Shown here in pieces: positions 55,497 through 59,887 of a stretch of DNA of 64,000 bases. The number at the start of each line of letters is the position of its first letter. Position 1 is the stretch's first letter. Under the pieces are notes generated by a model that was not told the DNA's origin, did no database searches, and was given only the letters and a program-made list of their open reading frames with translations. Made by a program: the position numbers and the translations under genes. Origin of the DNA: Saccostrea echinata (taxonomy: Eukaryota); assembly GCF_033153115.1 (NCBI RefSeq), contig NW_026889750.1:41478001-41542000 (forward strand), written 5' to 3'.

Positions 55497-55733
55497 CTGA
55501 AATGTTTAAAAGTATACAACTTTGAACATTTAGATTCTAATGGAGTGTTAGGATATAAGTTCAATATATCTATAGTATTAACAGAAAGATTCTTTTGTAT
55601 AACATACAGCAGTCATATGTAACAGTTATTCCTTATCCAAGCCTTTTCTTCTATTTGTTAGTCGACCGACTTTAGTCGTGGTTCTGAATTTTAAACATAA
55701 CAGGGATCTATGTATAGTGCATATAGATATTAC

Positions 55734-56151
55734 CTGATTTGCACGGTCCGGAGCTCTGGACTTTTAGATCACGTCCTTTCTTGGTTTGGGCCTCTCTGAG
55801 CTTACAGATGCTGGTGTATGTGACGTCATCGGTACCACAAAGGTTATCCTGATAGTCACAGACACACACTCCCAAATCTTTGTTGCTTTCCATCTGAACA
55901 CAGGTAAGGTAGTCGCCACATTTTGGGTACTTGTCCCCCTGTCCCGGCAAATCACAGACCTCCCCCTCAGCCTGGGCGCACACCTGACAACATTTACACC
56001 TATCACGGGTGATTCCTGCCTTACAAACCATGTCTTCCTGGCTAGGACAGGCACTGCGATCGCAGACCCCGCAGTCAGCAGGGATATCAATTTGTCCCAT
56101 TGAAAGACAAAGGAACCCCAAGAAACACGAAAGAAACACCACTCCGTTCAT
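55734..56151 (-). CDS. Secreted IGFBP-related protein (IGFBP7/KAZALD1/IGFBPL1 family), exon 1; full CDS join(56151..55734,55496..55353,54968..54795,54442..54399), 259 aa
   Basis: Hydrophobic signal peptide MNGVVFLSCFLGFLCLSMG; IGFBP N-domain C..CD...CP....C..G...DRCKCCQVCAQAEGEVC...CGDYLTC; Kazal CVC..LCGTDDVTYTSICKL..GPC; donor TCAG|GTAATA. All introns are phase 1 and the frame is consistent (780 nt). Confidence 0.94.
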
Positions 56152-56275: not shown

Positions 56276-57234
56276 ATTTTTGGAAGTGGGGAGTCTTCGA
56301 CTGCACTGTGTTTATGCCAAAGATAAAATATTGGGGGCTCCCTAGGGATAATATATTCTCTGTGCAGCTTTTATCTGTTCGATCGCAGTGATTATCACAC
56401 AGCCATAAAGCTACCATGAATCACAGCGCCTTATCTTAATTCCTCTAGTCCGAGGCGATGATAGTAAACGATAAGTAAAGCAACTGTACCCTCGACGTGC
56501 CTCATCGCAATCTGGTGAGAACAGCAAGATGTTTTACTCATAACTACGGCATCGGTGGAATTTCCCATTCTGAAATGAGGGGAGTACAATACACCATTCA
56601 ATGTTATAAGGACCATACCACTTATTTACAGGAAATTAAGTAGATGACCAAGTGCATATCAAACCTAAGTTATGACGAATATTACAATTATTAAAAGCAG
56701 TAAAATTGGAAAGAATGAATTTAAACAGAAAAAATGAAATAAAAAAACACTTATCACAATAAATGCTAATAACTCATTTTGAAGGTGTTTTGCCCCCCCC
56801 CCCCCCCCCGTGCGCCACCACCACACTTTTAAAAAAATAATGTCATACAATAAGTGTCCTATTTGTTCATATATTAATAACCAAGCGATTTTATGCATAC
56901 AAGAGGCATTTGCGTTTGTAGAAAATGGTTGAATTTCAGTAGAATTGTTGGAACTAGAAAATCCCCTTACCCAAGGCCTGGAATTAAGAAATACACTGTA
57001 CATAAACAAATCTTTCAAAAAAGTTTTGATAAATGCTATTTATTATCTACCATTTCAATAAGTTCCGTGCAGAAAATTGTTGAACTGGGTCCAAAAACTT
57101 GACACTTTAAACAATTCTTTATCTTTTCCATTGAACCAACTTTCTCGACGATTGATTTACACATTATCTAACAAAACCTTTGTAATTGCTGTCGATCGTT
57201 TTCGCAATCAATTTAAAAATTTGTAGATAGGAGC

Positions 57235-57264
57235 ATGCTGGTTAAAACCATGGCCAAATATGAA
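57235..57264 (+). CDS. NlpC/P60-like gene, predicted first coding exon (MLVKTMAKYE)
   Basis: TTGTAG acceptor at 57226, ATG at 57235, consensus donor GAA|GTAAGT; phase 0, matching the acceptor at 59227. Confidence 0.55.
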
Positions 57265-57729
57265 GTAAGTTTTAAATGTTCTCAAGGGTCTTTAGTTTAT
57301 AATTTAGAAACCTAGTCTACAGGGTTCTAAGTTTTCTATTTAGTGAATTGTTGTGCTAAATTACGCTATTGTACATGTACGATATCCCTGTTGGATATTT
57401 TCCCTTTACTTTTATTGTATTTGAAGGCTTTGTTTTTATGTGAATTCAAATATTGTACTGTATAAAAACAAAGATCGTAATGGGGATTATAAATGCAAGT
57501 TGTCTTAGGTGTAAGTAGGTTCGCAGTTGTCTCCCGATTCCACCGTTTTTTTAATCTTATAATCAACTATTAAGTTTTGTATTATTATTACTAAAGTTTA
57601 ATAACGATTTAATGTATATATAACGATGATATGTTAATAAATCTGAAAGTTGAAGGTGTTAAAAGCACCCAGATGCATTCCGTATGTAACGTGAGAAGAA
57701 GGAATGGTTTCTGTTTCATATCAATTGTA

Positions 57730-58054
57730 CAGGCAAATGGTACCAGGGGCTGCCCCCCCCTTCTTTTTTTCCAAGCATAACCTTTTACTATTGAAAATGT
57801 TCAATGAAATGCTGGTTGCCCCCACCCCCCTTTTCCCATTTTTTGCTGTAGCATAGTTATATCATGGTAATTTGGTAACGTATCAATAAAATTAAGTTGT
57901 GAAAGGAAGTTGGAACCCCCCCCCCCCCCTTCACGAAATAGGATTTTCGATTTTGGACAACTTTTTGCTTGTCACGTTTTACGTTTTTCAGGTAAGCTAT
58001 CAATTTTTTCTCTGGTTGCCCCCCCCCCCTTTCAAAAACGATACTACGTGCCTG
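57730..58054. mobile_element. MITE with CAGGC..GCCTG termini and a 5-bp TSD (second complete copy)
   Basis: TTGTA|CAGGC ... CTACGTGCCTG|TTGTA; shares GCTGGTTGCCCCC, TTTTGCTGTAG and TTTGCTTGTCA with 53167-53411. Confidence 0.8.
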
Positions 58055-59227
58055 TTGTATGATTGGGAATGAAAATCTCTATATGAAATATGAGGTACAG
58101 TTATTGATGTTAAGAGGGACCGACCCTTCTTAAAAGAAAGATAGCTTTCCAAGTAAAAAATCAAAATTAAAGTTTAATGAGTTATTGTTAAGACACACGT
58201 CAAACATTATCAAGAAAGTTTAGAAAATTTGCATTTGAGCAGGTTTATATACCTTTTCACTCTCTTTCACAAATGTGCACCGAAACAATTGCTGGATTTT
58301 AACAGGGTATTGGAGTCTCCCCATTTTTTTTTTCTAAAATAAACTCAAATGTTCAATTGGTGTCATATTTTTCATTTTATTAGCACAAAAATATGGAGAT
58401 GTTAGGGGCTTCGCCCCCTGTATTCTTAGAATAAAATTAAAACAAAATCAATTAAATGAATGAAATGAATCAGACAAATTTTTGATATAGGGGGCGTTGA
58501 AGCCCCAACAAAAAATCCTGGACCCGCCACTGGAAAGAACTGAAAATACGGATGCATATAAGTACATATATTCCTTTCTAAGATATGTAGAATTACTTTT
58601 TTGTCAATTCAACACATAATGGTACATTACAATCATGACGATGTTATGTGTGTCAAAGGGATAGGATACTAGTAAAAGCCCTATCAAAAAATTATCAGCC
58701 CAACCCACCCAACTCGACAAGCGCCATGCGTTTTTTTTTTGTACAACCCTCTTCTTTCAGATGTTTATTACATGCATTCCTTTTCTTCAATTTTACTTTA
58801 TTGTATTTTTTCTGAAATATATTACAATTTTAAAGGGAAAAAAACCCATACAAATGTATAAATACATGTATGAACATGTTGTAGCATAACATATTTGTAT
58901 TGTCTTGGGATCAATGACAATAATTTGGACACTTGACACTGGTATTGTCTATGATTATTAACGCTGAATACAATATTATATAACTGTTTATGTAACTGTT
59001 TATATACATATTTATATATATAAAAAAACAATGTATATTGTGAATTATGTTTAAATTGTGCATTTATATATGTGGAAATGCCTCTCGGGGCCCTTGATTG
59101 GTAAATAAAATAGCTTATATCTTGTATTTTGTACAGTGTATTATAGTATATATGTAATCAATTTGTTGTTCAACCTTTTTAAGACTGGGAAGCAACGTAC
59201 ATCCGTTTTCATACTCTCTTTGATCAG

Positions 59228-59424
59228 CTTGCAGGTGGCTTGATTGTAACAGAACGTGTTTCTCCCAATATCCGGATGTACTATGTCGCCAAGCACCATG
59301 TTGGGAGTCTGCTTTGGTCCTCTGACAGCGATTTTCACAAAGGAAACAAAAAGGACAAATCTGCCATGTTTGTATATGATGTTATAAGGGAAGCTGATCT
59401 GGCAGCGCCATGTCAGAAACCTTG
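59228..59424 (+). CDS. NlpC/P60-CHAP-like (papain fold) protein, exon 2
   Basis: Pyrimidine tract then CAG| acceptor; LAGGLIVTERVSPNIRMYYVAKHHVGSLLWSSDSDFHKGNKKDKSAMFVYDVIREADLAAPCQKPW; donor TG|GTAGGT. Confidence 0.8.
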
Positions 59425-59592
59425 GTAGGTATATACAAATAAATGAAATAAAACTAATGCATCATTTCACAATTTCCCCTCCCTTTCTCCAATATCTTTG
59501 ATTAAAAGTAAAAATGATTCTAAATTAGTTATTAACTAATAAAACGGAATTTCCTTTTCAAAATTTGGGTACATTGTGATGATATGTTTTAG

Positions 59593-59887
59593 GTTTAGTG
59601 GATACTCCCCGGCGCATTCATCGGAGTGGGGAGACAGGAAGTCCCAAATCATTCATGCGTGTCGGAACTTCCACACCGTATCCATTCCAATGCGAGGCGA
59701 TATTGTGGCGTTCCCCAACAATAATGGCCAAACACACTGTGGCATTGTATCTACGGGCGGGTGTTTCATAGGAACTTCAGACAAAAGAATTGTGGAGACT
59801 AAAATACCTTCCTTTACAAAGAGGGTGTTCTGGCGGTATATCGGCAACGTACCCAGTACCAGCAGATTATTTGAAAAATTCAAATGA
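59593..59887 (+). CDS. NlpC/P60-CHAP-like protein, exon 3; predicted CDS join(57235..57264,59228..59424,59593..59887), 173 aa
   Basis: Acceptor TTTTAG|G completes the Trp codon; FSGYSPAHSSEWGD...PMRGDIVAF......HCGIVS..CFIGTS...VFWRY; stop TGA. Confidence 0.8.

Follow-up and report, generated by a model that had tools for sequence, protein, structure and literature searches.

A three-exon gene of the oyster Saccostrea echinata for a leaderless CHAP-type protein with serine at the position of the catalytic cysteine

The window described here is a stretch of 64,000 nucleotides from the oyster Saccostrea echinata (NCBI RefSeq assembly GCF_033153115.1, contig NW_026889750.1, positions 41,478,001 to 41,542,000 of the forward strand), and the subject of this report is an intron-containing gene on its plus strand that ends at position 59887. 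An earlier note, made from the sequence alone, had read this interval as three exons with canonical, phase-matched splice sites that encode a 173-residue amidase of the NlpC/P60 or CHAP type, with serine in place of the catalytic cysteine, the catalytic histidine kept and no obvious signal peptide. Here we present the gene model, its expression and orthologues, the predicted fold and active site of the product, and its bacterial and animal relatives, together with an interpretation of its history and role. The locus is a real, expressed, three-exon oyster gene with the following features, given in window positions.

57144..57264, plus strand: exon 1, 5' untranslated region (reaching back to 57144 or further) and start codon (from the sequence and a contig of run X6)
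57214-57216, plus strand: in-frame TAA, which shuts the frame 5' of the start
57235, plus strand: alternative start ATG, which would give 173 amino acids
57250, plus strand: probable start ATG (MAKYE), which would give 168 amino acids
57265..59227, plus strand: intron 1, 1963 nucleotides, GT..AG, phase 0, with abundant C-tract repeats
59228..59424, plus strand: exon 2, N-terminal half of the domain including the helix with the nucleophile position (from translation, orthologue alignment and transcript contigs)
59360-59362, plus strand: serine codon TCT in the catalytic Cys column of the family, residue 50 of P0001
59425..59592, plus strand: intron 2, 168 nucleotides, GT..AG, phase 2
59593..59887, plus strand: exon 3, C-terminal half of the domain (EW, RGD, HCGIV, IVETK, WRY), stop codon TGA at 59885-59887
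59696..59701, plus strand: Gly-Asp of RGDIVAF, the sole columns invariant across the family (G106 and D107, 49 of 49 sequences)
59735-59737, plus strand: histidine codon CAC in the catalytic His column of the family, residue 119 of P0001
59795..59797, plus strand: glutamate codon GAG of IVETK, 20 residues after the histidine, candidate third member of a CHAP-type triad

Intron 1 is bordered by GTAAGT after 57264 and ...GATCAG before 59228, intron 2 by GTAGGT after 59424 and ...TTTTAG before 59593. Exon 1 contributes 30 coding nucleotides when counted from the ATG at 57235, a tryptophan codon is split TG/G by intron 2, and the phases are compatible throughout. The six-frame list of open reading frames (ORFs) shows the two halves of the gene as separate ORFs; the translations of exons 2 and 3 hold all of the motifs noted before, namely HVGS..W, KSAMFVYDVIREA, EW, RGDIVAF, HCGIV and WRY. 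The three-exon structure is borne out by the sequence, by the exon joins of the orthologues and by transcript junctions. As to the predicted 173-residue product, the single open frame stands and the length does not: a start at 57250 with 168 amino acids is more likely than a start at 57235, because all three orthologues (S. cucullata, Magallana gigas and Crassostrea virginica) begin with MA(K/E)YE, matching the ATG at 57250, and because the transcript contig of a related Saccostrea carries indels of 1-2 nucleotides at 57229-57236, spanning the first ATG. The TAA at 57214-57216 lies in frame, and therefore no further coding sequence is possible 5' of the start inside exon 1.

Both splice junctions for which transcript support had been sought are present in contigs from public runs. 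The junction 57264/59228 occurs in a contig of one run (X6), in which 57144-57264 is followed directly by 59228, and the junction 59424/59593 occurs in intron-less contigs of four runs from three studies. Exon 2 is covered by contigs from runs X1, X2, X3 and X6. The possibility that these intron-less contigs stem from a retrocopy was considered and ruled out: a search of the genome contigs revealed a single locus per exon, and the contigs are therefore transcripts.

The exons of the window gene were searched separately, and full-length analyses were carried out with the database orthologue P0001. Exon 3 matches oyster proteins at E values from 6e-53 to 1e-41. The full-length matches are three proteins annotated as 'uncharacterized', which are colinear with the window gene across both exon joins:

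P0001: orthologue from Saccostrea cucullata, 165 amino acids, 91% identity to the window exon-3 ORF
P0007: orthologue from Magallana gigas, 168 amino acids
P0008: orthologue from Crassostrea virginica, 168 amino acids

The orthologues share 74-81% identity between genera, with intact frames free of stops and frameshifts in all three genera, and the C. virginica protein is 79-81% identical to the other two. No identical protein from S. echinata itself was among the database search matches, and the gene may be absent from the annotation of its own genome. One further match, P0010 (119 amino acids), reproduces the exon-3 protein of M. gigas with many replacements patterned like C-to-T converted DNA; it is probably a database artefact called from bisulfite-sequencing reads and was excluded from the alignments.

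Bacterial contamination or a mis-assembled bacterial fragment would be one way to account for the closest non-animal relatives of the protein being bacterial. Against this stand the two spliceosomal introns with both junctions in transcripts, a G+C content of about 35% around the gene on a chromosome-scale contig, an IGFBP/Kazal exon and a Zic gene as neighbours, and orthologues in three oyster genera. On the strength of its introns, transcripts, animal neighbours and oyster orthologues the contamination explanation was rejected, and we give it a negligible probability.

The focal protein on its own matches the relevant Pfam models below their cut-offs. Exon 3 of the window scores 14.0 on CHAP (PF05257, cut-off 26) and 16.7 on NLPC_P60 (PF00877, cut-off 23), and P0001 scores 15.2 and 15.4, both under the gathering threshold; DUF6950 and DUF1287 match weakly to the window exons and to P0001. 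The M. gigas orthologue P0007, which bears the cysteine, comes near the threshold with 23.6 against 26 for CHAP and 22.9 against 23 for NLPC_P60. Relatives in the family exceed the CHAP gathering score with 28.7, 34.9, 35.9, 30.7, 32.9 and 27.2 bits, and a profile search of 1.84 billion representative sequences returned 57 relatives, many of them above the CHAP threshold. Membership in the CHAP/NlpC group is thus assigned by transitive homology through the family and not from the focal protein alone.

Structure prediction agrees with this placement. The AlphaFold (AF2) model of P0001, built from a 49-sequence alignment, reaches a predicted local distance difference test score (pLDDT) of 87.5 and a predicted template modelling score (pTM) of 0.82; in it, helix 49-60 carries the nucleophile position at its N-terminal end, the histidine lies in strand 118-123, and the strands span 97-153. 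All Foldseek matches of the model are of the NlpC/P60 type (probability 1.0, E about 3e-3), and the top matches of the VIA exhaustive aligner are NlpC/P60 or CHAP proteins, with Z scores of 13.5 for 8ev5 (Trichomonas vaginalis NlpC B3), 12.8 for 4xcm (a Thermus thermophilus DL-endopeptidase), 12.6 for LytE and 12.1 for CwlO. The corresponding values for the type VI amidase effectors are 10.9 for Tae3, 8.6 for Tse1 (Tae1), 6.6 for a Tae4-type enzyme and 6.0 for Tae2. A search of the family profile against the sequences of the PDB gave LytE as the best match to a solved structure (E 1e-4), with Tse1 at E about 0.9, Tae3 at E 1.5 and neither Tae2 nor Tae4 at E<=10; the Pfam model for Tae4 was not among the family matches. 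A profile made from the three orthologues alone had zero matches among PDB sequences, and the single bacterial member P0021 gave nothing useful in the same search. The fold of the model is papain-like and of the NlpC/P60 superfamily (CHAP-type), as the earlier note had expected, and judged by sequence similarity the family is not one of Tae1-4.

The position of the serine leaves the original reading of the active site intact. Residue 50 is the family's only conserved Cys column, with cysteine in 39 of 44 members and serine in the window, and lies at the start of helix 49-60; residue 119 is the family's only conserved His column, with histidine in 46 of 49 sequences and in the window. His is also kept in P0006, a sequence of Ostrea-like oysters that covers exon 3 only. 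Glu139 of IVETK does not vary among the three orthologues, and 21 of 49 family members have Glu there; where P60 enzymes have their third His, the focal protein has Gly. The glutamate is named here as a candidate third triad member, its role being suggested by the alignment.

The nucleophile position differs by lineage: M. gigas has Cys, Saccostrea has Ser, and C. virginica has Gly together with Phe instead of His at the position of residue 119. Serine is found in the window, in S. cucullata and in transcript contigs of runs X1 and X2 from related oysters, whose listed differences are all accounted for; a search with exon 2 for further species gave only Magallana-like fragments, which carry Cys. 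The serine is therefore real and fixed in the Saccostrea lineage, and neither a private variant nor a sequencing error, as had been considered earlier; it is not universal among the orthologues, nor do the orthologues all carry Cys. Cysteine is the likely ancestral state, since TCT and a GGN glycine codon are each one step from TGT and the outgroups have Cys.

The surroundings of the two catalytic residues have changed as well. Outside the focal clade, 26 columns of the family are conserved at a level of 75% or more. All three focal orthologues keep 18 of these, and five of the eight that differ (50, 51, 118, 119 and 120) comprise the Cys and His positions with the residues directly beside them. 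The replacements N51A, G118T and V120C are common to all three orthologues and are therefore older than the genera.

These residues bear on the possibility that the Saccostrea protein is an active hydrolase, in which Ser50, His119 and Glu139 would form a serine-type triad on a papain-like scaffold and attack an amide or ester substrate inside the cell. Ser, His and a conserved Glu are all in place, the serine is fixed in at least two Saccostrea species and in the related transcripts, and the GD and WRY motifs of the scaffold are retained; in EGL-26 of Caenorhabditis elegans, a member of the NlpC/P60 superfamily, a serine reportedly replaces the catalytic cysteine and is needed. However, C. virginica, at 79-81% identity, has Gly and Phe at these positions, so that the function shared by the orthologues cannot need the triad, and the changes beside both catalytic residues arose on the stem, before the cysteine was lost. 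Cys-to-Ser swaps in papain-like enzymes usually lower activity by orders of magnitude. We regard a serine-type hydrolase as unlikely; the orthologue pattern favours a pseudo-enzyme or a binder over a serine nucleophile and does not decide the matter.

Loss of the catalytic residues has parallels in gastropods. In P0023 (Haliotis asinina) and P0048 (Patella caerulea) Cys is replaced by Asp and Tyr and His by Thr and Ile, respectively, with signal peptides kept, and the closely related P0043 retains Cys and His. With gastropod members lacking both Cys and His, catalytic loss is recurrent in the animal branch.

The bacterial relatives of the family comprise 92 confirmed loci in Proteobacteria, Bacteroidota, Planctomycetota, Cyanobacteria, Acidobacteriota, Verrucomicrobiota and others. 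They are toxin modules, marked by their RHS and PAAR contexts; an Rhs_assc_core lies upstream of the CHAP domain in two bacterial members, and two loci are given as examples:

L034, 20-4881, Delftia acidovorans: RHS protein of 1470 amino acids ending in a CHAP tip, then an overlapping ORF of 153 amino acids
L026, 2736-5094, Pseudomonas neuropathica: PAAR gene, CHAP-tip protein of 331 amino acids, overlapping ORF of 188 amino acids

The small ORFs that follow the CHAP genes at L034 and L026 have no Pfam match and could be putative immunity genes. The bacterial tips are 25-35% identical to the focal clade and share the motifs KCN[LK]FV[YH][DE], GD, GHVGIV and (Y/W)RRY, with Cys and His kept in all of them.

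In animals, secreted CHAP relatives occur in the bivalves Tegillarca, Pinctada, Mercenaria, Crassostrea, Magallana and Saccostrea, the gastropods Haliotis and Patella, the annelids Capitella and Lamellibrachia, and the hemichordate Saccoglossus. These members carry signal peptides and the motifs KCNxFVYDV, GD(I/V)(I/V)AF, SGHVGIV and WRYxC. Cys-retaining bivalve paralogues, which had been asked for in the earlier note, exist in the S. echinata genome itself, where three paralogues of the secreted type all keep Cys and His:

L002, contig 12, about 16.606 Mb: three exons, holding the signal peptide, the Cys half and the His half
L003, contig 12, about 16.648 Mb: about 40 kb from L002
L004, contig 29, about 41.711 Mb: phase-2 intron at the position of the focal intron 2

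L002 is 100% identical over its three exons to the S. echinata RefSeq protein XP_061177296 (P0014). Intron positions were compared with the focal gene where they could be read: the exon break of L002 aligns with focal intron 2 within about one codon (the break only, approximately), and in L004 the phase was read.

The focal proteins differ from these secreted forms at both ends. Their maximum N-terminal hydropathy is about 1.0, whereas the relatives checked, with one exception, reach 2.3-3.2, so that neither a signal peptide nor a hydrophobic leader was found in the hydropathy scan, in agreement with the earlier note, and the C-terminal Cys of the secreted forms is missing. The focal protein is predicted to be cytosolic. 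Protein and profile searches found no relatives of the focal clade outside the oysters.

In the phylogenetic tree, which is unrooted, the spiralian set and the bacterial set are split with support of 96/92, and the focal orthologues form a clade within the spiralian set, with support of 100/100 and a branch 1.54 substitutions per site long. The simplest history would be a duplication in the oyster ancestor followed by loss of the leader and fast divergence. A transfer from bacteria to animals appears to be favoured because the distribution is wide in bacteria and narrow in animals. Two Saccoglossus kowalevskii sequences (P0036 and P0070) group with the bacterial ones in the tree, which suggests either a separate transfer or a rooting artefact. 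P0024, P0040 and P0047, from ENA/Logan contigs of up to 763 kb, form a well-supported clade within the animal half. In P0030, P0041 and P0042 an N-terminal zincin or Aspzincin_M35-like region (Pfam E 1e-5 in P0030) precedes the CHAP-type domain.

The long stem branch and the independent loss of catalytic residues in two lineages would also be expected of a gene that became roleless once its secretion signal had gone and is now drifting to loss, the Cys and His changes being early decay. Compared with the related Saccostrea transcript, 19 synonymous and 12 non-synonymous codons were counted among the differences listed, which corresponds to a rough ratio of non-synonymous to synonymous change (pN/pS) of 0.18 overall and 0.09 in exon 3. 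Exon 2 has more non-synonymous than synonymous codons among these differences, as decay would predict, in a comparison that covers little of the exon and gives an unreliable figure. The low overall and exon-3 ratios speak against decay, as do the frames that are intact in three genera with zero stops or frameshifts, the spliced transcripts in several runs and the retention of 18 of the 26 family-conserved columns; the 74-81% identity and the intact frames point to constraint likewise. Decay of the gene is in our judgement improbable.

The explanation that we prefer starts from an expressed three-exon gene whose leaderless product of about 168 amino acids has a papain-like fold of the NlpC/P60 superfamily (CHAP-type). 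The gene descends from the secreted CHAP family of bivalves, gastropods and annelids, the nearest kin of which are bacterial RHS tips and a PAAR-adjacent protein. In the oyster ancestor one copy would have lost its signal-peptide exon and evolved fast, with its catalytic centre remodelled by N51A, G118T and V120C; the nucleophile would then have been altered by lineage, with Cys kept in Magallana, Ser in Saccostrea and Gly, together with the change from His to Phe, in C. virginica, while the rest of the protein stayed conserved. The result would be an intracellular amidase domain, weakened or dead, whose groove binds a ligand instead; a stem peptide of peptidoglycan, or some other gamma-glutamyl or D-amino-acid peptide, would be the most plausible candidate.

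The orthologues are equally conserved with Cys and His, with Ser and His, and with Gly and Phe, and their shared function is therefore most likely independent of thiol catalysis. The protein is probably no longer a classical amidase, and groove-based ligand binding is our best guess for its role by analogy with RipD and a Cys-less Tae4 homologue of Nematostella. As a whole, this account of a leaderless, toxin-derived CHAP domain with a non-thiol, ligand-binding role seems to us probable, with a confidence somewhat above even.

Several points weigh against this account. Saccostrea retains Ser, His and Glu, a formally possible triad, and M. gigas retains Cys and His; catalysis may thus survive in some lineages, and the functions of the orthologues may differ. 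The pN/pS values are built on the differences listed for assembled contigs. The subtree of the three focal taxa is at odds with the species tree, so that any order of the losses is tentative, and the favoured direction of transfer is based on distribution, the tree being unrooted.

The retention of Cys and His in M. gigas also fits a new enzyme activity, thiol-dependent or thiol-independent, on a host substrate, for instance as an isopeptidase or an acyltransferase, which Magallana would possess and the other lineages would have modified. Active-site neighbours altered on the stem are what a change of substrate would predict, the protein is predicted to be cytosolic, and acyltransferases and phospholipases occur in the NlpC/P60 superfamily (PMC3142127). 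The nucleophile, however, varies among close orthologues, and neither sequence nor fold links the protein to the permuted LRAT or YaeF branches; canonical peptidoglycan endopeptidases match it best. A new activity of this kind is accordingly held to be very improbable.

A narrower version of the preferred binding role would have the protein read peptidoglycan fragments in the cytosol without hydrolysing them, as a muropeptide sensor or sequestering factor unrelated to NOD and PGRP proteins. This is a speculative proposal to which we attach low confidence. Were it true, the losses that distinguish the Cys, Ser and Gly lineages would be the trace of a switch from cutting to binding, and the locus could represent a formerly unrecognised intracellular component of bacterial sensing in commercial bivalves that are prone to bacterial mortalities.

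The closest known parallel, drawn in the earlier note and apt as an analogy now that the bacterial relatives are seen to be toxin tips, is offered by the Dae proteins, such as tick Dae2 and Nematostella Dae4, which are animal genes derived from papain-like interbacterial-toxin amidases, the Tae1-4 effectors of the type VI secretion system. Dae proteins gained eukaryotic signal peptides and introns (10.1101/2020.04.10.036376; PMC8713801), and the secreted paralogues of the oyster likewise carry both; the focal gene is an intron-bearing eukaryotic gene whose nearest non-eukaryotic kin are interbacterial toxin domains. Nematostella further has a second Tae4 homologue without the catalytic Cys (PMC8713801). 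In contrast to the Dae proteins, the oyster family has no significant match to a solved Tae structure and its bacterial kin are RHS tips and a PAAR-adjacent protein; the fold Z scores for Tae2 (6.0) and the Tae4 type (6.6) are lower than those for canonical NlpC/P60 enzymes (12-13.5), and the focal Saccostrea protein has neither signal peptide nor Cys. The oyster family parallels the Tae/Dae story without being part of it, at least at the level of sequence.

RipD (Rv1566c) of Mycobacterium tuberculosis is a non-catalytic NlpC/P60 protein reported to bind peptidoglycan without cleavage (PMC12067865). It shares with the oyster protein the NlpC/P60 fold and altered catalytic residues, and 4jxb and 4lj1 are among the Foldseek matches. 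RipD is bacterial and exported and has its whole triad changed, whereas the oyster protein is an animal protein without a leader and retains His (and Glu) in Saccostrea.

The best structural matches are canonical NlpC/P60 DL-endopeptidases (LytE, CwlO, MepS/Spr and T. vaginalis NlpC B3) with Z scores of 11-13.5, root-mean-square deviations of 2.4-3.4 over 106-120 residues and identities of 15-22%. The Trichomonas NlpC enzymes are described as laterally acquired by a eukaryote (PMC6299479). These canonical enzymes have a DCSG motif and a His-rich triad, while the oyster family has KCN, Ser or Gly at the place of the third His, and a better score on the CHAP model. The RHS- and PAAR-linked CHAP tips have the same domain and motifs as the oyster family; they are prokaryotic, are fused to or adjoin delivery modules, have a small ORF on the 3' side, and carry Cys and His in all cases.

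The adoption of a bacterial amidase toxin by an animal, with occasional dead copies, is an event of a known kind. The predicted relocation into the cell and the natural Cys, Ser and Gly series among close genera are new. Bacterial amidase toxins as secreted immune effectors of animals represent the known step, and the locus described here would show a later step inside the cell. The natural allelic series (Cys, Ser, and Gly with Phe) on one scaffold lends itself to the study of the change from enzyme to binder. The bacterial RHS- and PAAR-linked CHAP family, with its spread in bivalves, gastropods and annelids, may represent one more domesticated toxin besides Tae1-4, unless it has been catalogued before. 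The orthologue series, the secreted Cys paralogues in the same genome and the position of the family outside Tae1-4 by sequence go beyond the earlier note. Literature searches on oyster NlpC and horizontal gene transfer, on the locus and accession identifiers of the orthologues and paralogues, and on dae taxa found nothing relevant.

Other features of the window are as follows.

20498-21367, minus strand: Zic gene exon, ORF of 289 amino acids with Zic-type and C2H2 zinc fingers (zf_ZIC E 4e-26)
55708-56151, minus strand: ORF of 147 amino acids with IGFBP and Kazal domains (Pfam E 4e-7 and 5e-8)
57740-58060 and 58400-58500, within intron 1: several C- or G-tract motifs, with runs of 8-14 C between similar short words

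The ORF at 55708-56151 is probably an exon of a gene for an IGFBP7/Kazal-type secreted protein and lies head-to-head with the focal gene, about 1.1 kb upstream. On the tracts of intron 1 unrelated contigs from RNA-like runs stack with loose ends, up to 314x at 58009-58109 (X6), and the C- and G-tract motifs look like a dispersed, transcribed repeat family.

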